A DNA stretch of 64,000 nucleotides from Saccostrea cucullata (GCF_032062105.1 NW_026923049.1:1-64000), one strand, 5' to 3'; shown: positions 11,301 through 35,717, counted from the stretch's first letter. Translations and numbers: made by a program. The notes: generated by a model from the sequence alone, not told the origin.

Positions 11301-14300
11301 CTGCACCAAAAACATTAACCTGGTCATTCTTTTGCTAAAATTGCAGCATCTGAAACTTTGACTGGTACAATGAAACACACTAGAACCATCTTCCATGCAT
11401 GTCTAATCAATATAGGACATAGAAGTACTTAAAAAGAAAACTGCTCCAAAAAACTTAACCTTAACCCGGGACGCCGACACCGACGTTGAGGGAATTACAT
11501 AAGCTCCCCCAACTTCGTTGAGGTGAGCTAAAAATGTTTCAGAAGAAATATTTCTGTGCAACCAAATTATACAGTATTATATAAGAAATCATTATTGTAC
11601 AGGACGACAATAATTCAATTTTGCTTCAATCGAAGCTTATAAAAAGTTCTTCCATGGCAAATATGAACAACAAACGTTTATAAATGTTCTATTTTCCTGT
11701 CATTGAAGTAGTTGATTACAAATTGAAAATATTTTTTTCCGATGTCAAACATGCAGCTCATATTGCTTTAAACAAAGTAAATGTCAAATTAAAAGCTTGC
11801 AGATTATACTGGACATTGCATAATTAAATTTCTACATCTCATAAAAAATACACTATCATTACTATTAAAAAATCTCAGAGAGAGAGAAATGAGTCAGAGA
11901 GAGACAAGAGAGTCCAAGAGAAAGAGAAAGAAGAGAGATTTATTCACCTGTTTGATTTCCTCCCTGAACTTTTTGCGACTCAATGACGTGTTGTGTTCAT
12001 TTTTTTCCTCCTCTCGTTTAGAATTCTACAAGAAAAAGAAACAATACAGCCATGACTTTAATAAATATGAGTAAAAAAAATTCTACTTATTCCTTTCCCT
12101 TCTAAAACAATTTGATTATTATAAAAATTGTTTTGTAATGATCCTTGCTATCTTAAGGAATTTTCTGCCCCCCCCCCCCCCCCCCCCACAAAAAATCAAT
12201 ACATTCAATTAAAAAAAAGACGTTATGAAATAGAAACACTCCAATTTATATTTGAAATCTGACCTGTCAGTGTGCATAATCTTAGCACTTTAATATATAC
12301 TTTAAAAAGTACAAGTACTTGAATCACGTGACAAGAAAACAGTTCATAACGGATAACTCAACTAGGAAGCAATATTGTTGTCTGGGAGCCATGTTAGATT
12401 TACAGGTCAGATATGATACATAAAGCTGTTTTTACGTTCTTATTAAGTATTTTTAATTACCCAAATGAGTAAATTATTGTTCTACTTAAGAATTAACATT
12501 AAGATATTAATAAATATAGCTTGTCTGAAACTTCAATGTCTGAAAAAGAATGAAAGACTTTGAATTAGGTCATTGACGTGTCTGAAAATAGAATTTTGCA
12601 ATTATTACAATGAAATTTTCTTATGGTCATTCAAAATTGAAGCCATGGTCCTTTTTAAGTAGCAGTTTATAAGTGATGCCTGTTTTGAAGGGTAACAGTT
12701 AAAATTGAAACACGAGGAAAACCACTGTGAATCAACAAGTCAGTGGAGATTGACAATGGTTTTCTGAGGGATGTCAATCTTAACTGTTACCCTCCAAAAC
12801 AGGCATCATTTTTATTATTTTACTGAAAGTTTAATTGATAAAAGATTTTAGCCTAAAATTTGTCGAACATTAGGAAAGCTTTCAAATTCCTAGCTTTTGT
12901 TTTTCTCGGTAAGTTTTAAAAAAAAATTAACGACCCCTTTATTGTTTGTTTGATATTCAAAAAAAGTTCCTCATCATCAAAGTTTCATCATTTCTGTTGT
13001 TTTCAATATTTAGCCAAATTGGATGCATTGATTGATGTCAAGTGTCTTTGACTTCTTTCAAATGCATACATGTAACTTGCATTTTGAGAATTCTATGGCA
13101 TGTGTCATATTTCCGTTGTGTCACCTGTTGTTAAGTGCACTGCTAACGCTGAGGTTAACATTACAGATTGTTAAATGCATCTAAACCAATAAAATTTCAG
13201 TATTCAACATGAAAATATCACATTTCTTTACATTACCAACAGCTGTATAATCTTACTTTTCCAAAATTATTTGTATCAACAAACCAGTTAATTTCATGAG
13301 AATTTAATCATTGGTATGTAACCATCACTTTTACTTCTCTACTTTCATTGCAGATTGTCGCCTGATCTTATATAATGGATCCCCGGTATAGTGGTCAGGA
13401 TATCCTAAGGTGTGACCTTTGTGTGACCAATGCGGTTCAAAGTCACTGTGAGCTTTGTCATGTCAACCTGTGCAAGGCCTGTGTAGGAGAGCATCTCTCT
13501 GATTTTATCAAGAAACATAGAGTCATATCATATATAGAAAGAACATCGATGCCTACCTATCCTACATGCCCAAAGCATTCCAAGAACTGTGAACTTTACT
13601 GTGAAGAATGTGACATTCCTGTTTGTTCTACCTGTATCTCCTCAGGTAACCATAAGGGACATCATTTATCAGATGTTTTACAAAAACTTATCTCCAAAAC
13701 AAGAGATATGGAGAAAGACTTAAAAGAACTTGAGACTAAAATTTTCCCAAAATATGAAGAAATTGCATCTAGCATGAAAACCAAAAAAGACAACTTAGAA
13801 ACACACTACACTAAATTAACAACAGCTGTCACCAAACACGGAGAAGACTGGCACAGAGAAATTAACATCATTGTCAACAAACAGAAATCTGATATTGATG
13901 ACATGAAAACTAAGCATCTGGCAGCCCTAAATAAAGAGGAAAATGAAATCAAACACATTACTGCAGAAGTGAATCAATGCATACTTGATCTGAAGAAAAT
14001 GCTGGACGCCAATGATGTCTCCCTAACCTCTGCCTACAAATCCAGAAATGCTGAATTGAGACATTTACCTCCAGACCTCAACGTTTCATTCCCAACTTTC
14101 TCTACTCATCAGATCAACAAAGAAAAGCTCCATCAAATGTTTGGTTCTCTGTCATCATTATCCATTACAAGAGAAGAATGCGGTAACACAATTAAACCAC
14201 TGCTTGATGATCCAGAATTCATTACCACCATAGACACTGGGTATAAACTACTATACAGTGTTAGCTGTCCCAGTGATGTAGAAATCTGGACATGTGGAGA

Positions 14301-17300
14301 TAGTAAATCTATGAAACTCTACAACCTCAAGGGTAAACTTCTGAAGCCAATCAAAACCAAGTCAAGGAACAAACCAAGTCACATAGCAGTGACAAGGAGT
14401 GGAGATCTAGTTTATACTGACCCTCATACAAGAACTGTAAATATAGTGAAGAATAAACAGATACAGGAAGTAATCAGACTTCAGGGATGGACACCTTACA
14501 ATTTCTGTAGTACCTCCTCTGGTGACCTCCTGGTTACCATGGTCAGTGATGATAATAAACAATCAAAAGTTGTCCGTTACTCTGGCTCCACAGAGAAAAA
14601 ATCCATTCAGTTTGATAGTGAAGGCAAACCTCTGTATTCATCTGGTGACCTTAAATACATCTGTGAGAACAGGAACCTGGATATCTGCGTGGCTGACAAT
14701 AGCGCCCGTGCAGTAGTGGTGGTCAATCAGGCAGGAAAACTCCGATTTAGATACACTGGTCATCCCTCTACTACCACAGGATCATATGATCCATACGGCA
14801 TCACAACAGACAGCCAGAGTCAAATCCTGACAGCAGACTGGGACAACCACTGTATCCACATCCTAGATCAGGACGGACAGTTCCTCCGTTACATTGATAA
14901 TTGTGATCTACAGTATCCATGGGGTTTATGTGTAGACAACAGTGATAACCTCTTTGTGGCGGAGAATACCACTGGTAAAGTGAAGAAAATCAAATACATG
15001 TAAACACTGCATTATGTCAAGAAATGACTGTAAATAAGATTTAGTTATGAACTAAGAGTTAAAAGTAGTTTGACTTAGGACTAATCAATTTATAAGTAGG
15101 ACATGCACCTTATACAATGTTTTGAATTTCTGTTGATTATAAGAGAAACACAGTTTAAGATACTATATTTACATTTACAATGTCTTTGTTCAAGATAAAA
15201 TTACAAATAGTGAATGTACTTTTTTTCCTTATCAATGTACTAGTTCATCGATAGGCGCAGTCAAAAAAAATCACGAGCAGGGCGGGACAAACAGAGACAG
15301 AAGCAGGACTTCTAGCACGTGGATTGGCGGAATCAAAAGCATATAAATATAAGGAAAAACTGTCTTAATTTTCAATTTCAAGACAATGATATATTGATTG
15401 GCTTGCGTGATAATTTTATGCATAAACTCCTATGGCTTTGCTTTGATTGACATCATGAAATCGAAAATAAGACAGTTAATTCTTAAATCAAATGTATACA
15501 GATATTATAAAAGATCAATATTCATGAAAATCAAGAGTGCATATAGTTTGGGTTTGTACTTAATATGATTAAAAAAAAATTCTCAAAATTTTAATATTGA
15601 TTTTATCTTATCTGTATATCTAGAAATGGTTTTAAGACGTAACATTTTCAAAAATGAATACATCCAAAATCCTGTTTATAAAATAAATATACTGTAGACG
15701 TACTTTTTTACGCATGGTATTAATTTACGCTATGTACGCGGTCACAAATAATCCGCGGAAATATGTCCAAGCGTACGTAATATAAATGTAAGGCATATAG
15801 TGACAGTCTAGAAAAGCTGCATAATTTTCTACCCTCGGATTAAACAGAAATTGGGATTCCGCAGAATTATGACCCCGTGAAAAAAATACGTCTACAGTAT
15901 ATTATTATAACAGTAACTTGATCCGAAGGGTCGTATCACGTCGAGTTGACAGGCACGGATCATCAGATCTAACGAGACGCGAAGCATCAAGTTTGATCTG
16001 ATGATCCGCGTCTGTCAACGAGACGTGATACATGTGTTTGGCTCTTTGGATCAAGTTACTGTTATAATAATAAATTTATTGTATACCCCCTTATAACGGC
16101 TAAATATATTAGAATAAACCTTTAGAGATCATACTAATCCATTCAACAAAGCATAATAACAAAGGACCTCTTAACGTGAAAGAAAAATAATATAATGTTT
16201 CTGCATACTACGTCATCAGTTTCAGAGAGTGGTGATATGGATTCAGAAAACCACGGTGCTGTGATCTGGAAAGTCGAATCACGATGTCGAGATTTTGTAA
16301 AACCAACCCTAGAACTGAGTGATACACATTATGTATATAATAAATGGTTTTATTATGTGATTGAATACTCCTAGTTCTCTGTCTGGCTGAGATTTAACAA
16401 ATGAATGTAGATAAAATACTGTATTTCCTATGTAGCTTGTATCAAGAGCTTTGATTGGTTACAGAGTCGGGTGTAAATATCCGTGCATCTGACTTGAGCC
16501 GGGGGTAAATAAAACGTCACAATGCCTAGTTTTTCTATGATGATAAAAAGCAAATGACATGGAAGTCACGATGCATTGTTAGTAGTATGTTGTAAATCTT
16601 ATCGATAGGTTGAGACACAGTTGATTCAGGGAGTTATGTTTACAAAGAATTTATTTGGGTACAAAGGAAATAAATTCGTTATCCAGGTCCGATCAAGTGT
16701 GTACAGAAATTTACCCCGAGTTGTATTCCATACACCCTTCGGCATACGGCCTCAGAGTGTATTGAAGAAAAACCCAGGGTAAATCCCCGTACACACTTGT
16801 TTGAACCTGGATAGCTTATATTACACCTGCACATGAATTACCTATAGAACATTATATTATTTATTGACTTTGTTCACTTCAAAGCTGTAAAATGTTTTCA
16901 CAGCAGTGCTAACTTCAAGGCATACATGAAAAAATAAACCCAACTATTAAAATAAATATAGTATACATGTACATGAATTGTGCACAAATATATAATTTTT
17001 TATTAAGCTTTTCTCCTCATCTGCTTGAAACTATAGTTAATTAATAATAATTATTTACCCGCTCTGTAATGAATTTAAATTGGTCACATTATTTGACAGC
17101 CAAATGATAAATGCATAAACAATAATCATGCTATGAGTAATATGTATTTCAACATATTACACAATCCCAGCATAATTTTCTAACCTTTACTCTTTACCCA
17201 TATGCCACGATTTGACCCACTGGCCATATCTTTAGAGTGTTTGCCTGGCTGCCCCTTAGAGCATTGTTTGAAACAATCTGTAAAATTAGCTAGACATGCA

Positions 17301-20300
17301 GGGCTGACTGCTAGTAAAAGTTGTTAGCCCTGCCAAAAATGTACTAGCCAGAAAAAATAATTGTCTTTTATAAGTTTGTTTTAGCAATAATGTGAATGGG
17401 GGCTGCTTACTTATACATGAATAACTTACTCTCTTAGATCTGGTAAATTTGGCACTACTGCGGATTTTCTGTAGAAGAGTTCTGTGAAGGGGAGATTTAT
17501 GGCTTTCTCTTCGAACAGGGGACTCAACTGAAATATTACAAAACTTGTTTAATATACAATTCAAGTTATCAATTTTAATTTGATACAAAGAGAAAGTTCA
17601 TGATCATTATCTGCCAGTGGACTTTTCTTTCTTTTCTCATGAAAATAATGACAAATAATGAACTCCCCTTTCTGTTTCTTTGATTTTATGAACAAGTGTG
17701 AGGATTGACTTACTTTGTTATAGTAAGGTAGATGGGGATTAAGATACAAAAAGTAGAAGTTGACTGCCTAAAATGAGAGCCTCGTTTCAAAATATAAAAC
17801 AAATAACAACACACCACTTGGGTTCCTTTCTTTGTGGAACTTGTGATAGAACTCGGAGAGGTAGCTGACCATGGTCAGTTTATCTGGACACGCGCAGGTG
17901 GACATTTCCTGACCGGTCATGACTGGACTGATTCCCAGCTCTGTGTGGGCCACGTCCAACGCCAGCTGGTTATTCTTAGCCACGTCAAGCGAGGACAAGG
18001 AGTTAAACTCTCTGAAAATGCAATAAGTAAACAGTCAATGGTTGTAAGAAGATACACTGCTATATTATCCAAAGGCTCATTCTACTTTATTGTAGGATCC
18101 GAAGTAAAAATATCAATAGAAAAAAGTTATGTTTGGAAAAAGGGTCAGGCAATCCAATCCCAACCCAGCACCATCCCAAACCCCTGACTCTATATGCCTG
18201 TTTCCCTGACTCTATATGCCTGTTTCCCTGACTCTATATGCCTGTTTCCCTGACTCTATATGCCTGTTTCCCTGACTCTATATGCCTGTTTCCCTGACTC
18301 TATATGCCTGTTTCTCTGACTCTATATATGCCTGTTTCCCTGACTCTATATGCCTGTTTCCCTGACTCTATATGCCTGTTTCCCTGACTCTATATGCCTG
18401 TTTCCCTGACTCTATATATGCCTGTTTCCCTAACTCTATATGCCTGTTTCCCTGACTCTATATGCCTGTTTCCCTGACTCTATATGCCTGTTTCCCTGAC
18501 TCTATATGCCTGTTTCCCTGACTCTATATGCCTGTTTCCCTGACTCTATATGCCTGTTTCCCTGACTCTATATGCCTGTTTCCCTGACTCTATATATGCC
18601 TGTTTTCCTGACTCTATATGCCTGTTTCCCTGACTCTATATGCCTGTTTCCCTGACTCTATATGCCTGTTTCCCTGACTCTATATGCCTGTTTCCCTGAC
18701 TCTATATGCCTGTTTCCCTGACTCTATATGCCTGTTTCCCTGACTCTATATATGCCTGTTTCCCTGACTCTATATGCCTGTTTCCCTGACTCTATATGTC
18801 TGTTTCCCTGACTTTATATATGCCTGTTTCCCTGACTCTATATGCCTGTTTCCCTGACTCTATATGCCTGTTTCCCTGACTCTATGCCTGTTTCCCTGAC
18901 TCTATATGCCTGTTTTCCGTCTGCAGTCATATATCATACAGGGGCAAGTTAACAGGGGGAATTTAGTTTGAAGTCGGTATTAAAGTTCATGTTCTGTATC
19001 TTTTTATTGACAAACATGCAGGAGACATGAATAAGATGTTACAGTAACAATAATATTTTGTTCTTGAAGACTTACATAAGACTAGGTTTAAAGGTGTGTA
19101 TTAAGACTTACATAAGACTAGGTTTAAAGGTGTGTATTAAGACTTACATAAGACTAGGTTTAAAGTTGTGTATTAAGACTTACATCAGACTCGGTTTAAA
19201 GGTGTGTATTAAGGCACACAGAGCAAGTCCACTTCTCCAAGACGTAGTCAGATCAATTATGTGCACGTTACGGAACTTGTTATTTAGGACTCGCTGGCAC
19301 CAGTGTAATAATGTATAGCTGTCTATCAGCTCCTCTGGAATACAAAATTAATCACTTATGCTACCTAATATCTACAAACTTTGAAAATGTCAGACCACAA
19401 AAGAACCAATCATAAATGAGTATGAAAAATATTAAACAGCATTTTTTTTGCTACACATTGAGAATGGGTCAAGTACCAATTCACTGGGGGAAAAGTGTTG
19501 AAATAGGACAAAGGGGAATTCTCTAATGTAAATAAACATTTACCACTTCTTGGACGTTTGGCTGGAAGATCGAGGATTTCATCTTCATATGATCGATCAC
19601 CACAGTCGTACAGATGTCTCACTTGTTCAACACGGAGTAACTTTGTATTGAGGTTGGGGTACCTAATGATCAAGATAAGCAGAATGAACACAATGAAGTC
19701 AATACTTGAAAAAAAAATAGGCTTCTGTGGGTGAACATTCAATGGTATTTAACTTTTACAGAATGAAAACAGATAAGCTGAATTCAACAAAAACAAAGTA
19801 TCTATTTTTAATATTGTGCACTGTGTAGGAGAACATTTAAAATTTTCTGGGGGGGGGGGGGGGGGGGGAGAATATTTTAGAATTTTTGAACTAAAATACT
19901 AAATAAATAAATAAAAAATCTGCAAAAGAGGAAAGTAAATTTATTTCTGTGCCTGGTTTGTCACTGATATTCCATATCCAATCTTACCTTGTGTTTGGGT
20001 CGATTGTGTATTCACTGTGATTCTTGCTGAGGTTTTCAGGCGTAGTCTGTGACAGAAGCTGGTATATGCTCTCTCTCTCGGCTATGACCTGGAGTGGTGT
20101 CATTTTCCCCGAGGCCCAGCTACGGATCATCCAGGCAGCATCAAATCCGCCCAGAAATCCGCGAGCACAGCCCGAGCCTGTGGGCCAAAATGGCTGAAAA
20201 AAAAAGAATTTTTAATAAGTTTGTAAATTTTGTATGAAATACACAGAAATTATCTTGCATGATTTACTTCCATTTAAATAATTTTGCTAGACAAATTTTT

Positions 20301-23300
20301 TGGTAGGTTTCTTTACAAACAAATTCTTAATGAATTTAATCAGTTGAGGCTTTTTTAATGCATGCATACCTTTAAGTAAAATGTTAAAATATTCATGATA
20401 GAAAAAAGCAGAAAATTGAAAAATACAGTACATGCACTTAAAGACATTTAATTATATCATTTTGGTCATTTTCATTTCATTCCCTGTAATACATTGTACA
20501 TGTACTTCCAACGAAAACATACTCATTGGAAATTTGTTGTTTTCCCTTCCACTGCATAATACTTGATGAATGCTCTACCAGATTTATCTAATTTAATTAT
20601 AACTCACAAAAAAGTATAATTTTTGTCTCACTTCATTTCTGATATCTATGAATAGAGAAGCACTTCTCTAGCGAAGACAGTTACAAAACTACAAAGAAAC
20701 AATAAAAAAAAATTACCTCTAACAAACTGTCCCCAACGAGTCCAATTAAAAGCTTGTGGCCATTTCTATCCACAACTCTAGATGCATTCATAGCCGCAAA
20801 CATGGAGGTAAAATCAAACATGGCTACATCAGGTTGCCCGTAATGATTAATCGCGTACTCTAAGTTCGGCAAAGCAAAGTTTGTGGAGAAATTTGCCGCC
20901 TCTTTTGCGTAATCCAGTAATGCGTCCCTGTCAATATTATCCGGCGACAACAAGAGAGCTGTATCTGTCCTATCCTCGCGTAACACACCTTTGTCCAGTA
21001 AACTGTTCTTTTTAGCCGTCATCACAAAGTAGTGCGTGTCGTCTTTGTAATACACAATATTCTCCAGATTGATCCCTGTTTTCTCGTTCAGGTCCTTGAA
21101 GAACTTCTGGTTGAAGATGAAAGCCACGCCGCTAATTTCCTCCACTTTGGCCTCCTCTGTCGTGTTGCGGTTGATAAAGTTGGCCGTTATTGCTATGGCT
21201 AATTTCCCACGGAACTCCTTCCTTCTAAAACCTATAAACATTCCAAGATTTATGATTGTGTACAAACATGAGATTACAGCACATTAAAATTAAGTAATTA
21301 TCATCTTACTTAAAGGCTATCACGGTTCCAAAATTTTTCAGGTCATTTCAGTAACTTTTTTTAATTGTTCTGCTCTTAGTAGTACATGTATATCTATGAA
21401 ATTTTAATTTCAATACATGAATTAAGCTTAAAAAAATAATTCTTACAATAAATTTATGATTAAATCTAGTCTTAATTTTGCCACCTCCAGATCATGGGTG
21501 ATTAGCACTACTAGAATGACTATGAAAAATTGGAATTGAACATTTTACTCTGGTTTATGTTTATTCTGAGGATTCTAATACAGTCTTTCTCTAACTTAAT
21601 ACAGAAGCAAAAGTAAATGTAGTGAAAATATGATCTGAAACTTCCAGGTACTTGCCCTGTAGGGTGTTTCGTTTTCCATCAGCACCAATCAACACATCAA
21701 ATTCATACTCTGACACTACATGGTCACTCGGAGTACAGGCACACCGCCAGCCTACTGCAAAGTACATCAAATTTATATTATCAGGGTATATTCTGAATGC
21801 TTTGTAGTCAATATGTTATTTGATAAAATATCTCTAGGAGCTGGACAATTTATCAAAATTCAGACTTATTTCTCTTGGTTTGTTATTATTTTTAATTTAT
21901 TACAAGTACATTTATATCAATGTTATTTTTTAAACAACCATTGACAATAAAAAAATAAATAATATTAATATTAGCAGAACTTTTGAGAAAGATTTGGTTT
22001 TTCAAAAGATATCATACAATTTCAATGAAAGAAATGTAAGATATAATTTTAAATTGTAGAGAAATATATACTATCATTCCAATAACAGCGTGTCACTTCG
22101 CTTAACCGAGCGTGATTAAGTTCCACATGTTGATTACCATATTACTCATCGATTGGATGTTTGATTTCAATGAAAGCTACACTTCTTTGCATATGAAATA
22201 CTGAACCCAGCAATACCACTTACAATACTGACCAATCGTATTGAAATGATTGTTCACGAGAATGCAGTAAACAATAATCACATGTGGACAGGCAAAGCGA
22301 GTTTTCAACCTTGTAATGATGGAATTGATCGCTATATACAATATAATATAAATATTATAATAGTTCCAAAGTATAGCCTTACTTATTTCATGTTTTAAAT
22401 ACATGTATTCTCATTCGTATCAAAATTAACTCTATTCGGAAAAATCACAAGGAATATGGCACGTGCTTTTTCCCGGACAGTAAACGGGCTTTGACTGACC
22501 ACGTGTTGCCGGTGACTACAAATGCCGAGCAATCATTAAATACGATTGGTCAGTGTTATCGGTGTATTGTTGGATTCTGTTTTTTATATGCAAAGTAGTA
22601 TTGATTTCATTCAAACCAAACATCCAATCGATGAATGATATGGTAATCAATTTGTGAAATTTTTACCACGGTCGATCAAGCAAAGTGACACGCTGTTATT
22701 GGAATGATAGTAATTGCTCATTTTAATACAAATCAAAATGAAAACTTTATGATCTATTAAAAAGTTTTATATATTATGTATTACATATGGCTGAAATCTA
22801 AAGTAACAGCATGTTTTGTGCATAATTTTTACCATGATTACAGATACTGTAAAATCACATATTTTCAAGGGGTCAAGCAAATGAAATTTTACATTTCAAG
22901 GTGGTCATAAATTTGTGGGTCTCTCAATTCCTCAAAAACAACGATAATGAAACCCCCATGAAAGTGAGTGATTTCACACCGAGTACATAATTGTTATAGG
23001 CATTTATGTTAATTTACCACCAGGCTTCTCATCCGAGGGTTCAATCAATCCATCGAAACTAACGTTGACGTGAATTTCCACTCCGACCAGTAGCGCCACC
23101 TTCATCAGTATACACTGTAACTGTCGAATGCCTGAAATAACCAGAGGTCTCTGCATGATGATATTGAATCTCTACTGGCAAGAATTTACAATAGCACACA
23201 AAAGAATATTGTCTACTTTCATTTACCATTCAAATAACTTTAAATAAATATTTGCAAAGAGTACAACTTGAACAACTGCATTCTAAAATTACTTTTTTAG

Positions 23301-27329: not shown

Positions 27330-28011
27330 GGGAAGAAATGGAAAGGGGGGATTGAAATAAACGTGTTCCCAACTATTGTGTTCCCGACTATTTTGTCGTC
27401 ACAAAAGATTATTAATTGAAGCGTATAGCCCTAATAGAGGAGCAAAAATACATGTACAAGTCTAATTTTAATTAGATTGGACTTTTATGATTTTTTTCCC
27501 TACCTATATCCCTATGTTAAACTTGGACTCTCCTGGCAGGCTCTCCCTACCCCATGATTTGTCATATTCAAACAAATTTGAAAAATATACAAAGTAAACA
27601 AGTTTTCACCTTAGTTTCAACTGTTTTGACACAGTGGTTCTTTAGAAGATTATTAATATTGATAATAGTTTTAAACGATGCCACTAAAATTTCAAATCCC
27701 CTAAGTGACCCAAGGATGCTTTAATTGTGACAAGTTTAGTTGAAATTGGCCCAGTGGTTTTTAGAAAAGTAATAAATGACAGATCTTATTTTTATGATAA
27801 AATAAAGTGCCACGCCACAGCATGATACGCCCATCAAAAAATTATAATTAACTTAAATGGTTTAGAGTGCAAGAAAACCATGTCAACCTTGATTCTAAAA
27901 TTTCCATAATTTTTTCTATTCCTTAAAATATTTGTTTATCCATCCCCTGTGGTGTAGGCATTAATCATAGCATCATTGATAGATTTCTATACTGGTTGTA
28001 TTAGACCTTGT

Positions 28012-28604
28012 TGATGAGTAGTAATTTTAGGCTCAAAAGTAATGAAGTGATTTATGATTAAATGTCCAGAGTTACAGGCATTTGGATGCATTGCCCAGAC
28101 TAGTCAAGCTGTGTTGGGGTAATTAAAAGTAGAGCAGTGTCTAGTGTGGTCAAGAATAATGAGTCTTTAATGAGTGGAGCAATGGGAGCTATTGTTCGTA
28201 GAATCGGGAGCCGTGTATTGAGTTAAGGTCAAGCTAGGTTATGACAGTTTGATAAGGATTTGATAAAGATATATGTAGAGTTGGAGTAAGTTAATTAATA
28301 GGATGGAGCTAATGTTTTAGATAATCATCTATTGGAGCTAAGATTAGTATATAATAAGTGTGACATTTTTAGAAGGGGGGACTCCTTTATTAGGATTTAG
28401 GCAGTACTAGCTAGCATAAATGTAACATCTTTTGTTTGTATTGTGCCTCCTCATTGTATATATGTAAATAAATTAGTGCACGGTTTACTGACTTTTTATT
28501 GGAAATAGCATTACAAGGATTTATTAACCAAGGATATCTTAATTACAATTGGATATATACGAAGTGGAATTAAAAAGTATAAATGCTCGGTCACCTCCGT
28601 GACA
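28012..28604 (+). repeat. 5' LTR (593 bp)
   Basis: Matches the 3' LTR except two positions seen by eye; TATA-like tatataat at 28348. Confidence 0.97.
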
Positions 28605-28610
28605 TATTTT

Positions 28611-28630
28611 TGGTGTCAGAAGTGGGATTC
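28611..28630 (+). promoter_or_regulatory. Primer binding site complementary to tRNA-Leu (CAA type)
   Basis: TGGTGTCAGAAGTGGGATTC is the reverse complement of the tRNA-Leu 3' end ...GAATCCCACTTCTGACACCA. Confidence 0.88.
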
Positions 28631-28771
28631 CAGCATTCACATGAACTGGAAATATATTAGAACCTGTGTCTTTTTCAAAATTGGATTATTGTGTGTGTGT
28701 TTGGAAGAATTTAATATTCATTGGATTAATTTGTGAACATTCATTGGATTAATTTTTGAATTCTGTTAAAA

Positions 28772-29686
28772 ATGGGAAGAAAAGGAAGGCAAAGAAGTGT
28801 ATCTCCGATTTCGTCACCTAGGATGTTCACCAGTCAGCGAGAAGCTACCGATGATAGAATAGAATCAAAATCTCATGTTACGCCATCCAAATTCTATGGA
28901 GATGTTGGAGATGATTTCGAGAGTTGGATCAAAACATTTGAAAGGATAAGTCGTGCTAACAAATGGAGACCTGAGAGGAAAATTGAAATGCTACCTGCAT
29001 ATTTGAGAGGTCGTGCAGCTGATTTTTACGAAGATTTAGATCAAGATGTCCAAGAAGATTTTGACAAGTTACTTGATCGCATGAAGGAGAGATTTTGTCC
29101 AAAAGAGTTGCAGAGAATGTATTACACAGAATTATTTCAAAGAAAACAGCTAGCTCGAGAAAATGTTGAAGATTATGGAAGTGCTATTTTGAAGTTGGCT
29201 AGACGTGCACATGGAGGAGTTTCTTTAGATGAACATGACAGGCTTGTCATGGAGCATTTCTTGCAAGGTTTACGTCCTGAGCTACGTCGTTATGTCATGA
29301 TGGCAGATCCTCAAAGTTTTGAACAGGCTTTCAGAATTGCAAAAAGAGAAGAATGTAACGAGCAACTGATAATGAGTAGCCAACCAGAACCTGCTAAAGT
29401 CAACGTAGTTGCAAACGAAATGAAAGTTATTATGGATTCTTTTGAGAAGATGACAGGGAAGTTGGATACAATTGCAGGAAAGCTAGATGGTCTTAATCTT
29501 ACATCAATGAAACGTGTGGCACCTACTCGCCATGTTCCACCTCAAGGAAGTTATGAGTCAAGAAATCGTCAGACAAGACGTTGTTATAATTGTGGACGAA
29601 ATAATCACCTTGCCAGAGAATGTCGATTTGCAACAAGCACCCCAAGAAAATTTGTAAGGATTCCTCAGCGTACAGGTTTAAACTAA
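28772..29686 (+). CDS. gag: Gag (capsid plus CCHC zinc knuckle)
   Basis: PSKFYGD...W...FE, Q...E.VEDY, FLQGL, CYNCGRNNHLAREC. Confidence 0.95.
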   Translation: MGRKGRQRSVSPISSPRMFTSQREATDDRIESKSHVTPSKFYGDVGDDFESWIKTFERISRANKWRPERKIEMLPAYLRGRAADFYEDLDQDVQEDFDKLLDRMKERFCPKELQRMYYTELFQRKQLARENVEDYGSAILKLARRAHGGVSLDEHDRLVMEHFLQGLRPELRRYVMMADPQSFEQAFRIAKREECNEQLIMSSQPEPAKVNVVANEMKVIMDSFEKMTGKLDTIAGKLDGLNLTSMKRVAPTRHVPPQGSYESRNRQTRRCYNCGRNNHLARECRFATSTPRKFVRIPQRTGLN

Positions 29687-29718
29687 AGCAGACCTCCTTA
29701 GGAGAGGGTAAGGCGGTC
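29677..29718 (+). promoter_or_regulatory. -1 programmed ribosomal frameshift signal
   Basis: T TTA AAC in the gag frame; 7-nt spacer; stem GACC(T)CCTTA / TAAGG(C)GGTC; pol is in the -1 frame. Confidence 0.8.
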
Positions 29719-29889
29719 ATCAGTGAAAAAGAAAATGCCTCTGACAAAAGGATTTTATGTAAAAACAGTGATGAAACAAAATGTGAAAAAAGAAAATGTG
29801 AAAATTTTGTGAAAGTACCTTCTTTAGTTAAAGGTGATTAACAGGGAATACAAATAAAAGGGAAAATTTTTGGAATTGATGCTGTTCTA

Positions 29890-32800
29890 ATGTTGGATAC
29901 AGGAGCCGTTGTTTCTTTGATCAGTGACAGATTTATTGGCCCAGAAATGAGAAATAAATTGACTTCGACAGACAGACGTATAGTATCAGCAACTGGTCAA
30001 GCTATTGATGTGATAGGCATTGTTGAGTGTGAAATTGAAGTTAACTGTGAATTATTCAAACATAATGTGTATGTTGCAAGAAACCTTTGTTATGGTGTGA
30101 TTATTGGAACAGATATTTTGAAAAGTGTTGGTGCAGTTCTTGACATGGAGGATGGCTCAGTATATTGGAATGGAAGTTATGTCAAGTTTTTGAGGGAAAA
30201 CCGTAATGTTAGATGTTCTGTTCATTTGGCTGAAACAATTGAAATACCTGAAAGATCCCAAGTAGTGTGTAATGCAAGAGTCAGTCCAGAATTTTATGGA
30301 AAAATTGGAATTGTGGAGCCTAAGAGCGATTTTATGGAGAAGTATAGTGTTATGCCAGCTAGAGTATTAAGCAGAGCGTGTGAATTGATGGCAGTTACAG
30401 TTGTAAATTCATCAAGTCAACCTGTGATTCTACATGAAAAAGTGAATATTGGAAGTTTCTGTGAAGTGTGTGAAATTCATGACAGTGATGCAGTCAATGA
30501 AATACCAGAGAAAGAAAAGGAGAGAAGTGACATTTTGAAGGATTTAAATATAGATGTAGGAAAAATGTCCGAAGAACAGAAAGAGGAAGTCAGAAGATTA
30601 TTTAGCGAATATCTTGATGTTTTCGCAAAGGATGATAATGATTTAGGAGAAACAAGTTTAGTCAACCATCAAATTGACACGGGAGATGCTCACCCTATAA
30701 AACAGCGACCTTATCCAATACCATTTGCACAGAAAGAAGAAGTAAGGAAACAGATTAAGAGTATGCTAGAAAAAGAAGTTATAAGACCTTCAAGTAGTCC
30801 ATGGGGATCACCTGTAGTGTTGGTGAAGAAGTCCGATGGAAGTTATAGATTTTGCATAGATTATAGAAGAGTGAATGCAGTCACTAGGAAGGATGTGTAT
30901 CCCTTGCCTAGAATAGATGAGATGTTAGAAGTTTTTCAGAAAGCGAAGTATTTTTCTGTCATGGATGTATTAACAGGCTATTGGAATGTACCTGTATGTG
31001 AAGAGGATAAAGAGAAAACTGCATTTGTAACGTCGGAAGGATTATATGAGTTTAATTGTCTCCCGTTTGGATTGTGCAATGGTCCTAGTACATTTCAAAG
31101 GTTAATGGATTTGGTTTTATCAGGAATACAGTGGAAAATGGCTTTGGCATATATTGATGATATCATAGTTTTCTCAAATACATTTGAAGAGCATATTGAA
31201 AGATTGGAGGAAGTATTCAGGAGATTAAGGGGAGCAAATTTAAGATTGAAGAGAAGAAAGTGTTCGTTTTTCAAAAGTGAAGTGGAATTTCTCGGACATA
31301 TTATATCATCAGAAGGAGTGAAAGCAGATCCTAAGAAGGTAGAAGCTGTGCGCAACTTTCCAAGACCAACTTCCATAAGATTTTTAAGAGCATTCCTTGG
31401 ACTGGCCTCATATTACCGCAAATTTATTCCTAACTTTGCGAAGATTGCAGATCCGTTAAATAAACTTTTACATAAGGAGACATTATTTTCCTGGGATCAG
31501 AAGTGTGAAGAAGCTTTTCAAAAATTGAAAGAGTTGATGACTATTGCTCCAGTGTTGTGTTTTCCTGATTTTGAAAAACCATTCAAACTCAGTACTGATG
31601 CCAGTGATCAAGGTTTGGGAGTAGTTCTTTCACAAGAAACTGATGTTGGAGAGCGTCCTATTGCATATGCCAGTAGAAGTTTGAAGAAAAGTGAATTAAA
31701 CTACCCTACCATTGAAAAGGAAGCTTTAGCTGTTGTGTGGGGAATTGGAATATTTAGACAGTATTTATTTGGACACAAATTCACTGTTATTACAGATCAC
31801 AATCCATTGCGTTGGCTTATGGGGATAAAGAATCCAAGTGGAAGATTAGCAAGATGGGCTTTAGCTATCCAGGAGTATGATTTTGAAATTCAGTATAAAC
31901 CTGGTAAGAAACATGGAAATGCTGATGGATTGTCGAGATGTGGGAGTGGAGAACCAAGAATAATGTTCTTAGAAGAGCTACCAGAAAAACTTCAATTAAA
32001 GAGTATAAGTGAAATGCAAATGAAGGATCCAAAGTTACGAGATATTATTGACTACCTGAAAGATAATAAACTTTCAACAGACGAGGAGAGAGCTAGACGA
32101 GTTATGGCTTCTGTTTCATTTTATGAGCTAGTGGATGATGTGCTTTATCATATTTGGGCACCAGATGTTAAAGGAAAGCGTAAAGAAGTTAGAAGGAGAT
32201 TAGTTATTCCAAGGACACTGATTGATGAAGTTTTAACGTGGTGTCACAATGACCATACAGCAGGACACCTGGCATTCCATAAAACTTATTATAAAATTCG
32301 ATCGAGATTCTTTTGGGAAGGAATGTATAAAGACATAGATTTCTGGTGCAAATCATGTCTAAACTGTGCGAGTAGAAAAACACCTAAAGGGAGAAAACGA
32401 GCTCCAATGTTACCCATACCTGTTGATGGACCATTTGACAGAGTTGCGGTTGATGTTTTAGGACCATTACCACCAAGTTTGAAAGGCAATCGTTATATAG
32501 TAGTGTTTTCAGATTACTTGACAAGATGGGTAGAAGCATTTCCAGTATCAAATGCCGATGCGAAAACCACAGCAAAACTGTTCGTTGAAGAAATTATTTG
32601 TCGACATTCAGCTCCTCGTACATTACTTTCTGACAGAGGACGAAACTTCACTTCGAGTTTGATGAAGGAAGTATGTGATTTAGTGAATACAAAGAAGATA
32701 TTTACAACTGCTTACCATCCTCAGTGCGATGGATTGGTAGAGAAATTCAATGACACTTTAACAACTATGCTGTCAATGTTTGTGAATGATCATCAGCGAG

Positions 32801-33615
32801 ACTGGGATGTTTTTATTCCATATGTGCTATTTGCCTATAGGACAAGTATACAGGAAACTATTCAGGAAACACCATTTTATTTAGTTTATGGAAGGGATGC
32901 GCGATTACCAGTTGATGTGGCATTATCTGAACCAACTCGTAGATATACTGATGTGGACGACTACAAAAATGTTATATTACATCGATTAAACGAGGCCTTC
33001 ACTTTAGTGAAAAGTAATATAGAACTTGCCCAACAAAAGCAAAAACAACACCAGGACAAGAATGCGAAAGAGCCAGAATTTAGTATTGGAGAAAGAGTTT
33101 GGATTTACTTGCCTGTGACAAAACAAGGTCTTACTCACAAATTAATTCATCCTTGGAATGGACCACATCGCATAATAGAAAAAACCTCACCTGTGAATTT
33201 TAAAGTTGAAAGTTGTGATAACAAAAGAAGAGAGCAGATTGTGCATGCAAACAGAATGAAAGCATTTGTTGATCCTGAAGATTTACCACCTAATCTGCGA
33301 TTTAATGAAGACCATTCTGACAACGAAAGAGAATCTGGAGATGAGAATGAAGAGAATTATCCAGGTGATGAAAATAATTCAGAATTAGAAAATGCACAAA
33401 GAACGGTGTTAGAACCTGAAATAATAGAAGTTTGTGATAAGTTATGGTCCAGGAATGATAAAGGGAGAGCAGAAGCTAAATATTTTGTGAAATATAAAAA
33501 TGATGAAAAAGAAAGTACATGGGTGGATTCTTCACTAGTTCCAGGAAATTTAATCGAGGAATTTGAAAGAAATTATAAAGGTCGAGGTGCTGCATTCAGA
33601 CAAAGAAAAAAATAA
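29890..33615 (+). CDS. pol: Pol: aspartic protease, RT, RNase H, integrase, chromodomain-like tail (frame extends upstream to the frameshift site, with one TAA at 29839)
   Basis: LDTGA, YIDD, TDAS...E.E...TDH, HHCC, DVLGP/SDRG/EKFN, GPH, YFVKY...STWV. Confidence 0.97.
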   Translation: MLDTGAVVSLISDRFIGPEMRNKLTSTDRRIVSATGQAIDVIGIVECEIEVNCELFKHNVYVARNLCYGVIIGTDILKSVGAVLDMEDGSVYWNGSYVKFLRENRNVRCSVHLAETIEIPERSQVVCNARVSPEFYGKIGIVEPKSDFMEKYSVMPARVLSRACELMAVTVVNSSSQPVILHEKVNIGSFCEVCEIHDSDAVNEIPEKEKERSDILKDLNIDVGKMSEEQKEEVRRLFSEYLDVFAKDDNDLGETSLVNHQIDTGDAHPIKQRPYPIPFAQKEEVRKQIKSMLEKEVIRPSSSPWGSPVVLVKKSDGSYRFCIDYRRVNAVTRKDVYPLPRIDEMLEVFQKAKYFSVMDVLTGYWNVPVCEEDKEKTAFVTSEGLYEFNCLPFGLCNGPSTFQRLMDLVLSGIQWKMALAYIDDIIVFSNTFEEHIERLEEVFRRLRGANLRLKRRKCSFFKSEVEFLGHIISSEGVKADPKKVEAVRNFPRPTSIRFLRAFLGLASYYRKFIPNFAKIADPLNKLLHKETLFSWDQKCEEAFQKLKELMTIAPVLCFPDFEKPFKLSTDASDQGLGVVLSQETDVGERPIAYASRSLKKSELNYPTIEKEALAVVWGIGIFRQYLFGHKFTVITDHNPLRWLMGIKNPSGRLARWALAIQEYDFEIQYKPGKKHGNADGLSRCGSGEPRIMFLEELPEKLQLKSISEMQMKDPKLRDIIDYLKDNKLSTDEERARRVMASVSFYELVDDVLYHIWAPDVKGKRKEVRRRLVIPRTLIDEVLTWCHNDHTAGHLAFHKTYYKIRSRFFWEGMYKDIDFWCKSCLNCASRKTPKGRKRAPMLPIPVDGPFDRVAVDVLGPLPPSLKGNRYIVVFSDYLTRWVEAFPVSNADAKTTAKLFVEEIICRHSAPRTLLSDRGRNFTSSLMKEVCDLVNTKKIFTTAYHPQCDGLVEKFNDTLTTMLSMFVNDHQRDWDVFIPYVLFAYRTSIQETIQETPFYLVYGRDARLPVDVALSEPTRRYTDVDDYKNVILHRLNEAFTLVKSNIELAQQKQKQHQDKNAKEPEFSIGERVWIYLPVTKQGLTHKLIHPWNGPHRIIEKTSPVNFKVESCDNKRREQIVHANRMKAFVDPEDLPPNLRFNEDHSDNERESGDENEENYPGDENNSELENAQRTVLEPEIIEVCDKLWSRNDKGRAEAKYFVKYKNDEKESTWVDSSLVPGNLIEEFERNYKGRGAAFRQRKK

Positions 33616-33940
33616 ATTGGTGACATAGTGAATAAGTGTGCGGATTACTAGGATTGTGATTTTCATGTGAAATTGTGAATATGTTAGTTCAGAAGATGAA
33701 GATAATGGTGATTCAGATAAATTTGACAGGAACCGTGACTTGCGTAATGTACATTAAGATGGCCAGTGCTCCAAAACCATATGGATGGCTCCAAGTTTCA
33801 TTGTGTGGTGCTCCCAAAACACATAAATTTTGGAATTTGGCATTTGTCAGCCCAGGTCTATATATTGGACATTGGAATGAAAACAACTTAAACTGAAATT
33901 TACTTTCTTGGAGAACATTCAACTTATTACATGTATTATT

Positions 33941-34660
33941 ATGGATTATTCTAAGAACTATTGTTCACTTTGTAACAGAGAATTTAAACACAGACGGAAT
34001 TTATACAGACATAACAGAGAGTGTCATTCCAATGGACATTACGATCATCAGTGCCCTGTGACGACGTGCGGTAAAGTTTTCGGAAGAAAATATGCTTTAA
34101 CACAGCACATGAAGAAGTACCACACTTATTATGATGAGCCTGAGCCAGTGTTTGTGACCATCAAGAACGACATGTACTCTGACATTTCAGATGAAGAAGA
34201 AGAGAATTTTGGAGAATTCTTTACAAATTATTATTCTCCTGTGAGCAACTTATCGTTAACATCATTAGAGGAAACAATGGAAACTCTTGTAAATCCAGAG
34301 GAAGACGAGCCCCAGAACCATGAAGTGAATCCTAACTATGAGGAAGAAGATGTGTCTGACCTTGAAGACCCTGAAAGTTCAGATGACCTAGAGCGGGAAG
34401 AAGAAGCAGAAGGACCAGATGACGACTTCAACCCCACCAAGACAGTGGAATTGATGTGTATAAACTTAACATTAAAACGATATCAACATACCTATGCAGA
34501 TGGACATCAATCTATAGAAAGAGAGACTGGAATAAGTTATAGTAAAGGATTAATACCAGAAGAAATTGACTTTTCTGAAATCGCGATGAATATCATCAAT
34601 GAAGTGCCAGAACATTTGAACAATTTGAGAAATCGTTTCGTGTCTGCTGAAATTTTGTGA
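33941..34660 (+). CDS. Accessory ORF3 of the Gypsy element: two C2H2 zinc fingers plus acidic region (239 aa)
   Basis: CSLC...F..RRNLYRH...H and CPVTTCGKVFGRKYALTQHMKKYH; D/E-rich tracts; lies between pol and the PPT; no signal peptide or TM segment seen. Confidence 0.88.
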   Translation: MDYSKNYCSLCNREFKHRRNLYRHNRECHSNGHYDHQCPVTTCGKVFGRKYALTQHMKKYHTYYDEPEPVFVTIKNDMYSDISDEEEENFGEFFTNYYSPVSNLSLTSLEETMETLVNPEEDEPQNHEVNPNYEEEDVSDLEDPESSDDLEREEEAEGPDDDFNPTKTVELMCINLTLKRYQHTYADGHQSIERETGISYSKGLIPEEIDFSEIAMNIINEVPEHLNNLRNRFVSAEIL

Positions 34661-35107
34661 ATTCTCTCGTACTTCGTGTTGATGTGCCTTTGGACTAAAT
34701 GACTTATTTTGGACTTTATAAATTATTCGCTTTGGATTAATATTTTCTATGAACAGTTTAACTTATAATTTGTGATTATGGACAGCTCAATACATTTTTA
34801 TGAACAGTTAAATATTTTTTTTAAATTGTATAACTGATGTTACACTGTGTTGATATGTGTTTGGTGGTTCATATATTGTGAAATGTTAGTGTTTGTTACT
34901 TAAGTAGGTGATGAAGAGATGCTCATGGGAAGATAATGATTTAAACTAATCAATGAAGTTTAGGAGATTTTACAATGGATTTTAAGGTGTATAGATTTGT
35001 TTAAGTAGGTTAGTTCTTTTTGATAAACGTTTCCATAATGTATCTAGAGGACATATTGTAGTTTTAGTGTTAATGTAATAGTAGTTGTAAACTGAGGACA
35101 GTTACTT

Positions 35108-35124
35108 AAAAAGAGGGGAAGGAA
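35108..35124 (+). promoter_or_regulatory. Polypurine tract
   Basis: aaaaagaggggaaggaa directly before the 3' LTR. Confidence 0.9.
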
Positions 35125-35717
35125 TGATGAGTAGTAATTTTAGGCTCAAAAGTAATGAAGTGATTTATGATTAAATGTCCAGAGTTACAGGCATTTGGAT
35201 GCATTGCCCAGACTAGTCAAGCTGTGTTGGGGTAATTAAAAGTAGAGCAGTGTCTAGTGTGGTCAAGAATAATGAGTCTTTAATGAGTGGAGCAATGGGA
35301 GCTATTGTTCGTAGAATCGGGAGCCGTGTATTGAGTTAAGGTCAAGCTAGGTTATGACAGTTTGATAAGGATTTGATAAAGATATATGTAGAGTTGGAGT
35401 AAGTTAATTAATAGGATGGAGCTAATGTTTTAGATAATCATCTATTGGAGCTAAGATTAGTATATAATAAGTGTGACATTTTTAGAAGGGGGGAGTGCTT
35501 TATTAGGATTTAGGCAGTACTAGCTAGCATAAATGTAACATCTTTTGTTTGTATTGTGCCTCCTCATTGTATATATGTAAATAAATTAGTGCACGGTTTA
35601 CTGACTTTTTATTGGAAATAGCATTACAAGGATTTATTAACCAAGGATATCTTAATTACAATTGGATATATACGAAGTGGAATTAAAAAGTATAAATGCT
35701 CGGTCACCTCCGTGACA
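35125..35717 (+). repeat. 3' LTR (593 bp)
   Basis: Direct repeat of 28012-28604. Confidence 0.97.

Follow-up and report, generated by a model that had tools for sequence, protein, structure and literature searches.

A Gypsy retrotransposon of Saccostrea cucullata that carries a zinc-finger gene

LTR retrotransposons are generally thought to rely on host transcription factors, while self-encoded transcriptional regulators are regarded as a hallmark of complex retroviruses. A Gypsy-type element within a 64,000-nt stretch of Saccostrea cucullata DNA (GCF_032062105.1 NW_026923049.1:1-64000; hereafter, the window) raises the question of whether an invertebrate retrotransposon might also encode its own regulator. 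A preliminary description, made from the sequence alone, noted an intact third open reading frame (ORF3) with two C2H2 fingers in the env position and six copies of a short motif in U3, and proposed a self-contained DNA-binding regulatory circuit similar in logic to that of foamy virus Tas/Bel1. On reexamination the observation proved correct, and one motif was found clustered both in the main promoter and just upstream of ORF3. The interpretation was supported only in part; binding of the ORF3 protein to DNA and activation of transcription remain inferences.

Structure of the element

The element is young, its two 593-bp LTRs differing at 2 positions, and no other copies or solo LTRs of it are present in the window. 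Its features, all on the + strand, are as follows.

28008-28011 (+), target-site duplication TTGT, 5' copy; the 3' copy is at 35718-35721
28012-28604 (+), 5' LTR, 593 bp, with TG..CA ends, TATATAA at 28348-28354 and AATAAA at 28467-28472
28175-28338 (+), U3 motif cluster: [T/G]GGAGC at 28175, 28184, 28206, 28304 and 28333, plus TGGAGT at 28282; spacings 9, 22, 76, 22 and 29 nt, the last copy ending 10 nt before the TATA box
28611-28628 (+), PBS-like, TGG-initiated 18-mer, shared with relatives L001 and L009
28772-29686 (+), gag, 304 aa, intact, with Retrotrans_gag and a CCHC knuckle
29605-33615 (+), pol (PR-RT-RNaseH-IN with the Integrase_p58_C tail), in the -1 frame relative to gag and overlapping it by 82 nt, as in relatives; interrupted once by an in-frame stop, with no frameshift detected
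33716-33830 (+), conserved non-coding island in the pol-ORF3 spacer, with three inverted motif copies, GCTCC[A/C], at 33768, 33788 and 33810 (spacings 20 and 22 nt); candidate internal enhancer/promoter
33859-33865 (+), TATA-like box, inferred from sequence only, 44 nt after the last inverted motif and 76 nt before the ORF3 ATG; kept in L001
33941-34660 (+), ORF3, 239 aa, intact: fingers at aa 8-29 (33962-34027) and aa 38-61 (34052-34123); acidic disordered region with a conserved hydrophobic-then-YSDIS-acidic motif at aa 63-165 (34127-34435); conserved beta-hairpin plus helix domain, as predicted, at aa 166-239 (34436-34657)
35108-35124 (+), polypurine tract, conserved in L001 and L003
35125-35717 (+), 3' LTR, with motif copies at 35288, 35297, 35319, 35395, 35417 and 35446

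Relatives are designated here by locus number. L001 is a sister element whose ORF3 protein is 57% identical, while L003 carries a 96% copy. The terminal repeats, their TG..CA ends, the 4-bp duplication, the PBS-like 18-mer and the polypurine tract, together with the Pfam domain order in pol (RVP, RVT_1, RT_RNaseH, Integrase_H2C2, rve and Integrase_p58_C) and the Retrotrans_gag and zf-CCHC matches in gag, identify a Ty3/Gypsy (Metaviridae) element. Troyka elements were considered and rejected because they have CG..CG ends and 3-bp duplications.

Both fingers of ORF3 fit the classical pattern C-X2-4-C-X12-H-X3-5-H with its aromatic and Leu core, as described earlier. Finger 1 is C-X2-C-X12-H-X4-H, with His at -1, Arg at +2, Asn at +3 and Arg at +6, and finger 2 is C-X4-C-X12-H-X4-H, with Arg at -1, Tyr at +2, Ala at +3 and Gln at +6; the His-to-Cys linker is 8 residues. 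Pfam zf-C2H2 matched finger 2 above its curated cut-off (31.3 bits against 25.2), whereas finger 1 gave only sub-threshold hits. Residues 63-165 contain 37 D/E, 2 K/R and 11 aromatic residues. The highest 19-residue hydropathy is 0.53, so there is no signal peptide or membrane segment, and no env-like domain was found by Pfam.

Conservation and predicted structure of ORF3

Is ORF3 a functional gene or a captured fragment of a host zinc-finger gene carried as a passenger? A profile search found about 39 clusters at 50% identity that match beyond the fingers, although generic C2H2 proteins dominate the lower part of that search. Members share two fingers, a hydrophobic-YSDIS-acidic motif and a roughly 75-aa C-terminal domain. 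In every locus with enough flank (L001, L002, L003, L004, L005, L006, L007, L009 and L013) the gene lies directly after the integrase C-terminus, and L004 and L009 are Mytilus edulis assemblies. The L003 copy differs by 22 synonymous and 9 non-synonymous changes (dN 0.016, dS 0.18; dN/dS about 0.09), indicating purifying selection. Against L001, pN/pS is 0.23 for the fingers, 0.18 for the C-terminal domain and 0.63 for the acidic middle, while dN/dS is 0.08 for gag and 0.10 for pol. Decay of ORF3 in sister copies had been named beforehand as grounds for rejecting the proposal, and ORF3 is not a decaying frame. Some copies do have damaged fingers (P0001 and P0032), and P0001, a close copy, has lost a zinc ligand of finger 2. 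Nevertheless, because position and three-part architecture are kept among ORF3 proteins only 23-35% identical, because selection is clear and because motif clustering has P of about 1e-3 or lower in independent tests, the view that ORF3 is functionless and the motif clusters coincidental is very unlikely and already close to refuted.

AlphaFold2 with only 3 sequences was uninformative (pLDDT 36), but with 36 sequences it gave pLDDT 81-95 for residues 1-62, predicting a tandem beta-beta-alpha C2H2 pair. The best PDB matches by Foldseek were DNA-bound tandem fingers, the CTCF-DNA complex 5t00 and the Tramtrack two-finger/DNA complex 2drp (TM 0.68, rmsd 1.8 A, 34% identity). The Arg at -1 of finger 2 is invariant in 9 of 9 members, and Arg at +6 of finger 1 is present in 7 of 9. 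The C-terminal domain is also confidently predicted to fold, but has no known relative: it had no PDB sequence match even at E 10, only scattered chance Pfam hits, and no fold match in PDB or viral fold searches. In public contig collections, a distant alignment was too diverged to make patterns, a close alignment found no further relatives in viral contigs or JGI metagenomes, and a 944-nt contig (L014) was too short to reach an LTR. No paper describing the ORF3 family was found in literature searches.

Motif clusters in U3 and upstream of ORF3

The preliminary description placed TGGAG at 28175, 28282, 28304 and 28333, GGGAG at 28184 and 28206, and a TATA box at 28348, all of which were confirmed. 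[TG]GGAG occurs 6 times in U3 against 1.17 expected in dinucleotide shuffles (P = 0.0008), exceeding what composition predicts. The C that follows GGAG had been overlooked, as had the inverted cluster upstream of ORF3. The sharper unit, GGAGC, occurs 5 times against 0.29 expected (0.3-0.4 across tests; 0 of 5000 shuffles reach it), all on the + strand, and in an unbiased scan of all 5-mers it is the most enriched word of the LTR and also the top 5-mer in the L001 U3. Motif number and the 9/22-nt spacing are kept in L001, where the first three copies are 15/15 identical against 71% identity for their surroundings, although these surroundings are themselves fairly conserved and footprinting with two lineages is weak.

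The same motif, inverted, occurs three times in the 115-nt island upstream of ORF3, a finding that strengthens the Tas-like logic beyond the preliminary description. The inversion of the motifs there suits double-stranded DNA recognition rather than RNA recognition. This island is 88-90% identical to L001, against 40% for the rest of the spacer and 65% for the ORF3 coding DNA, and is not coding-like. Clusters of three or more hits within 60 nt occur in the 64-kb window only in the two LTRs and upstream of ORF3 (P = 0.0008 for such a cluster anywhere in the 6.5-kb interior). A TATA-like box follows, but such words are common in DNA with 35% G+C. Two splice acceptors suggested earlier as a route to ORF3 expression are not conserved, both losing their AG in L001.

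A second lineage, comprising L004 and L013, has identical recognition residues (NKNR / RSHK) and shares a different U3 repeat, ACCG[A/T]C. That repeat also clusters within about 250 nt upstream of their ORF3 and is followed by a TATA-like box. In an unbiased 6-mer test, the pre-ORF3 interval is top or tied top in L001, L004 and L013 (z 2.9-5.7) and second in the window element (z 2.4). In contrast, L009, L006 and L012 show no copy of their U3 motif upstream of ORF3, and in L006 the pol-ORF3 spacer is only 27 nt, so ORF3 must be expressed another way there.

Finger residues and the repeated motifs

The preliminary description also argued that the C2H2 recognition code predicts a site matching the U3 repeats. 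This argument carries little weight and is not counted as real support. With only the reliable contacts used, predicted cores are 3 nt long, and the one predicted for this element, GGA, is not enriched in its own U3 (10 observed, 9.0 expected); the code match is close to what chance allows (roughly 0.1 per lineage). A cross-matrix of predicted cores against the U3 of seven elements did not discriminate cognate from non-cognate pairs, except GAGNA in L012. L013 has the recognition residues of L004 but no GGAA-type site, and the ACCGAC motif that the two share is not what the code predicts. Recognition positions were not more variable than other finger positions. Co-variation is partial: the two lineages with Gln at +6 of finger 1 and R-N-R in finger 2 (L006 and L012) have palindromic GAG-containing U3 repeats, while L009 shares finger 2 with the window element and the TTGGA half of the motif.

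A proposed regulatory circuit and its alternatives

The tentatively favored explanation is that ORF3, a true accessory gene of a clade of gag-pol-ORF3 Gypsy elements of bivalves, encodes a small nuclear DNA-binding protein whose fingers would recognize the [T/G]GGAGC repeats just 5' of the U3 TATA box and, inverted, in the island 5' of the second TATA-like box. ORF3 would then be made from its own internal promoter or enhancer and feed back on both promoters. In this view, the acidic, aromatic-studded middle would serve as an effector (activation) region, though its almost neutral evolution also fits a mere linker, and the C-terminal hairpin-helix domain would serve in oligomerization or partner binding. 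The analysis itself establishes the conservation and selection of the gene, the predicted fold of its fingers, the enrichment and conservation of both motif clusters, and the recurrence of a different U3 motif upstream of ORF3 in a second lineage; binding of ORF3 to these motifs, the sign of its effect, its expression and transcription from the internal TATA-like box are inferred.

Alternatively, the motifs may be sites for host transcription factors that drive both promoters, with ORF3 binding DNA or chromatin for another purpose: steering integration, countering host silencing (on sequence alone, its hydrophobic stretch followed by Ser/acidic residues resembles a phospho-regulated SUMO-interaction motif), or repressing the element for copy-number control. 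Tandem word repeats 5' of the TATA box are usual LTR enhancers and occur in every relative examined, the code prediction fails in L013, three lineages lack the motif upstream of ORF3, and the C-terminal domain is the most constrained part of the protein, which suggests a conserved protein partner. However, this alternative, judged only somewhat less likely than the favored explanation, does not explain why the U3 word, which differs between lineages, recurs just upstream of ORF3 in two lineages with different fingers. No motif copy lies near the insertion site of the window element, the nearest being about 3 kb and 2 kb away, so a targeting role has no support from this single insertion.

A role in RNA binding, for example in nuclear export, translation or packaging of the unspliced genomic RNA, which would be comparable to that of CERV of the C. 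elegans element Cer1 or of Rev-type proteins, is judged unlikely. Finger 1 gave a weak, sub-threshold hit to the dsRNA-binding zf-C2H2_jaz model (E 0.0019), accessory export factors exist in Gypsy-type elements (PMC10309623), and the 3' U3 motifs are present in every transcript. Nevertheless, the best structural matches are all DNA-bound fingers, and no Rfam family or other RNA element was found in the element. In the window element and L001 the internal motifs are the reverse complement of the U3 motifs, so the RNA would carry two different words, whereas in L004 and L013 they are in the same orientation; that orientation is not conserved argues for duplex DNA recognition. The latter orientation also led to rejection of RNA-RNA pairing between inverted motifs in one transcript.

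More broadly, it is possible, although held at less than even confidence, that a clade of bivalve Gypsy elements are "complex retrotransposons," each encoding a sequence-specific zinc-finger transcription factor made from an internal promoter and acting on matching sites there and in the LTR, with fingers and sites co-evolving between lineages. This would be a convergent reinvention of the spumavirus circuit outside the Retroviridae and the first self-encoded DNA-binding regulator in the Metaviridae, joined to a previously undescribed C-terminal domain. It would show that such regulatory autonomy also arose in Gypsy elements of invertebrates, and would offer a natural system of co-evolving two-finger proteins and their sites, spread over dozens of lineages within the same hosts. 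Even if the motifs are host-factor sites and ORF3 serves targeting or anti-silencing, the ORF3 family and its new C-terminal domain would represent an undescribed accessory function of the Metaviridae.

Comparison with known systems

The env-type ORF3 of insect errantiviruses (gypsy, ZAM and Idefix) occupies the same position, 3' of pol and before the PPT, but the present ORF3 lacks the signal peptide, membrane segment and env-like domain. CERV of the C. elegans Gypsy-type element Cer1 is likewise a non-env accessory protein that supports the element's own gene expression (PMC10309623), but it acts on export of genomic RNA and no homology to it was detected.

The proposed wiring is that of spumavirus Tas/Bel1, a DNA-binding regulator with an acidic effector region, encoded 3' of pol, with sites in U3 and in an internal promoter upstream of its own gene (literature on Tas is cited within PMC4402516). 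It would have been reached with unrelated parts. PDB sequence, PDB fold, viral fold and Pfam searches with ORF3 and its family returned only generic C2H2 proteins and no retroviral transactivator, and the likeness is one of proposed function only. Tas is not a zinc-finger protein, and the internal promoter of foamy viruses lies inside env, a gene that this element lacks.

A precedent for internal expression is provided by the Oikopleura Tor elements (Metaviridae-type), which express their third gene from an internal promoter, Penv, in pol or in the post-pol spacer, rather than by splicing (PMC4402516). The third gene of Tor is a membrane glycoprotein (env) and not a DNA-binding protein, and no shared LTR/internal motif or self-regulation has been reported there. 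Tramtrack and CTCF, which the predicted fingers match in fold and relative arrangement, are host transcription factors, and the remaining 175 residues of ORF3 have no match in Pfam or PDB. Tramtrack shows that two fingers can suffice for sequence-specific binding.

Organization of the element and its flanks

The region 28012-35717 is a complete LTR retrotransposon on the + strand, whose two 593-bp LTRs differ at 2 positions, so the insertion is recent. The LTRs start with TG and end with CA and are flanked by a 4-bp TTGT duplication, a TGG-initiated PBS-like 18-mer follows the 5' LTR, and a purine tract precedes the 3' LTR. The same 18-mer is kept in elements whose ORF3 proteins are only about 30% identical, lying at about 218-235 in L001, a 6.9-kb contig that carries a related element, and at about 4739-4756 in L009, a locus from a Mytilus edulis assembly. 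The principal features of the window are as follows.

660-1740, tandem array (34/67 nt)
8701-9250, tandem array (45 nt)
10439-11283, tandem array (147 nt)
13375-15003 (+), intronless 542-aa ORF with a B-box and NHL repeats (TRIM-NHL-like)
18182-18915, tandem array (22 nt)
20681-21265 (-), exon encoding a MICAL Rossmann domain
28012-28604 (+), 5' LTR
28611-28628 (+), PBS-like 18-mer
28772-29686 (+), gag
33768, 33788 and 33810, three copies of GCTCC[A/C], the reverse complement of the U3 motif, in the pol-ORF3 spacer
33941-34660 (+), ORF3
34142-34210 (+), family-wide motif within ORF3 (aa 68-90)
35125-35717 (+), 3' LTR
36583-36701 and 36729-36847, pair of 119-nt direct repeats (79% identical) about 0.9 kb 3' of the element
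38559-40977, 44138-45682 and 61573-62780, three arrays of a satellite with a period of about 166 nt (88-92% matches)
41635-42755, tandem array (64 nt)

The B-box/NHL gene and the MICAL exon are the host genes flanking the insertion. Within the element, gag has Retrotrans_gag and a CCHC knuckle, and pol has protease, RT, RNase H and integrase in Gypsy order. The pol frame overlaps the end of gag by 82 nt in the -1 frame, as it does by 31-70 nt in three relatives (L001, L009 and L013, a further locus of the family). In this copy the pol frame is interrupted once by an in-frame stop, and no frameshift was detected.

The observation made in the preliminary description proved correct. ORF3 is intact and encodes two C2H2 fingers with the residues reported at positions -1, +3 and +6 (H, N and R in finger 1; R, A and Q in finger 2) and an inter-finger linker of 8 residues. 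The middle region contains 37 acidic, 2 basic and 11 aromatic residues, and no hydrophobic segment was found that could serve as a signal peptide or anchor. All six motif copies reported in U3 (TGGAG at 28175, 28282, 28304 and 28333, GGGAG at 28184 and 28206) and the TATA box that follows them (28348) were confirmed at their positions. The motif [T/G]GGAG is enriched, with 6 copies observed against 1.2 expected (P = 0.0008), but the true unit includes the next base: GGAGC occurs 5 times against 0.3 expected and is the most enriched of all 5-mers in the LTR.

Conservation of ORF3 in an element family

ORF3 is a real accessory gene of an element family. A word-indexed protein search revealed two relatives of ORF3, one 96% identical (locus L003) and the other 57% identical, on the L001 contig, which has the same gag-pol-ORF3 order and intact gag and pol. 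Compared with L003, ORF3 shows 22 synonymous and 9 non-synonymous differences (dN/dS about 0.09). Compared with L001, the fingers and the C-terminal 74 residues are constrained (pN/pS 0.23 and 0.18, respectively), while the acidic middle is nearly free (0.63). Some copies carry a damaged second finger: the 96%-identical copy (protein P0001, L003 1441-2160) has Tyr in place of the first Cys ligand of finger 2, and protein P0032 (locus L011) lacks the last His of that finger.

An exhaustive profile search found about 39 clusters at 50% identity that match beyond the fingers. Although full-length members are only 23-35% identical to the window protein, they share one architecture, consisting of two fingers, a short hydrophobic stretch followed by a YSDIS-acidic motif, a variable acidic region and a conserved C-terminal domain of about 75 residues. 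The hydrophobic stretch with YSDIS and its acidic run resembles, on sequence alone, a casein-kinase-2-phosphorylated SUMO-interaction motif. Wherever the contig was long enough, the gene lies directly after the integrase C-terminal domain of a Gypsy pol, as seen in L001, L002, L003, L004, L005, L006, L007, L009 and L013, of which L004 and L009 come from two Mytilus edulis assemblies. The position, architecture and selection of ORF3 speak against the view that it is a functionless passenger, a reading that is now very unlikely.

In L004, pol is split over at least five ORFs while ORF3 is intact, and a long tandem array with 837- and 1328-nt spacings lies 3' of the element (L004 13500-20300). 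In L012, an element with 99.5% identical LTRs, a 2.08-kb internal duplication or insertion (10237-10800 and 12314-12879) lies inside the stretch annotated as the ORF3 gene (spliced model, 222 aa).

Predicted structure of ORF3

AlphaFold2, run with a 36-sequence alignment, predicted three regions: confident fingers (pLDDT 81-95), a disordered middle (about 50) and a confident C-terminal beta-hairpin plus helix (88-96). The best matches among solved structures are DNA-bound tandem fingers, including the two-finger Tramtrack-DNA complex (TM 0.68, rmsd 1.8 A). In contrast, the C-terminal domain matched nothing in Pfam, PDB sequences, PDB folds or viral folds. No retroviral transactivator, foamy-virus Tas/Bel1 being the one in view, was returned by any search.

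A second motif cluster upstream of ORF3

A second cluster, absent from the preliminary description, was found in the spacer between pol and ORF3. It consists of the three inverted copies, GCTCC[A/C], and is followed 44 nt later by a TATA-like box, with the ORF3 ATG 76 nt beyond. In the whole 64-kb window, three or more hits within 60 nt occur only in the two LTRs and here, and in simulations of the 6.5-kb interior such a cluster arises with P = 0.0008. The cluster lies in a 115-nt island that is 88-90% identical to L001, while the rest of the spacer is about 40% identical and the ORF3 coding DNA 65%. Because the few differences are not of the synonymous kind in the only open frame, and L001 lacks the ATG of that frame, the conservation is not coding. 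L001 keeps the three copies with the same 20/22-nt spacing. It also keeps five GGAGC in U3, with the same 9/22-nt spacing for the first three, and those three are 15/15 identical, against 71% for their surroundings. Spacings of 20-22 nt, about two helical turns, recur. The two splice acceptors proposed upstream of ORF3 in the preliminary description are not kept in L001.

An alternative possibility is that ORF3 has an RNA-directed role, like that of CERV of Cer1. The inverted orientation of the internal motifs and the predicted DNA-type fold speak against this reading, and it is considered improbable.

Motif clusters in other lineages

The ORF3 proteins of L004 and L013 carry identical recognition residues (NKNR / RSHK), and these elements share a different U3 repeat, ACCG[A/T]C, just 5' of the TATA box. 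That word also clusters within about 250 nt upstream of their ORF3, this time in the same orientation, and is again followed by a TATA-like box. In a blind test of which 200-nt interior window shares most G+C-containing 6-mers with the U3 core, the pre-ORF3 window ranked first or tied first in L001, L004 and L013 (z 2.9-5.7) and second in the window element (z 2.4), but was not distinguished in L009. L006 and L012 also lack the internal copy, and L006 has only 27 nt between pol and ORF3. Thus, the two-cluster arrangement holds in two of the four to five lineages sampled, not in all. The U3 regions of relatives carry larger tandem units: L009 has about six units of about 32 nt (4254-4481), and L006 has four units of 38 nt (1600-1745), each with a 7-nt inverted repeat separated by 5 nt, directly 5' of the TATA box.

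Relationship between fingers and motifs

The preliminary description had argued from the C2H2 recognition code that the two fingers match the U3 repeats, and this argument is formally right, as the canonical contacts, Arg to G and Asn at +3 to A, place G-G-A inside [T/G]GGAGC. Some parallels among relatives are suggestive. L009 shares finger 2 with the window element and shares the TTGGA half of the word. L004 has Asn instead of His at -1 of finger 1, and its top word is GGAACC. The two lineages with Gln at +6 of finger 1 and R-N-R in finger 2 (L006 and L012) have palindromic U3 repeats built on GAG. However, when only the reliable contacts are used, the predicted cores are 3 nt long and do not separate cognate from non-cognate LTRs, and GGA itself is not enriched in the window U3. 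Furthermore, L013 has no site for its fingers, and the recognition positions are not hypervariable. The code match is therefore treated as weak, post hoc support.

The interpretation offered in the preliminary description, a self-encoded regulatory circuit analogous in logic to that of foamy virus, is supported only in part. The best-supported reading, still tentative, is that ORF3 is a DNA-binding regulator that would act on the element's own U3 and on an internal promoter or enhancer upstream of its own gene. The conservation and selection of ORF3, the enrichment and conservation of the motif clusters, and the recurrence of a different U3 word upstream of ORF3 in L004 and L013 were observed directly, while the binding of ORF3 to DNA, its effect on transcription and the activity of the internal promoter are inferred, and the fold of the fingers is predicted. 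Precedent for an internal promoter for the third gene of a Gypsy-type element exists in Oikopleura Tor (PMC4402516). A competing reading, somewhat less likely, is that the motifs are sites for host factors and that ORF3 serves targeting, anti-silencing or repression.

By all structural criteria tested, the element is an ordinary member of Ty3/Gypsy, and what is unusual is its third gene. This gene is not an env, and no homology to any known retroviral regulator was detected. No paper describing a C2H2 ORF3 in the Metaviridae was found, although the literature covered was incomplete and repeat databases were outside the search. Together with the paired motif clusters, the gene resembles the Tas/internal-promoter circuit in logic only.
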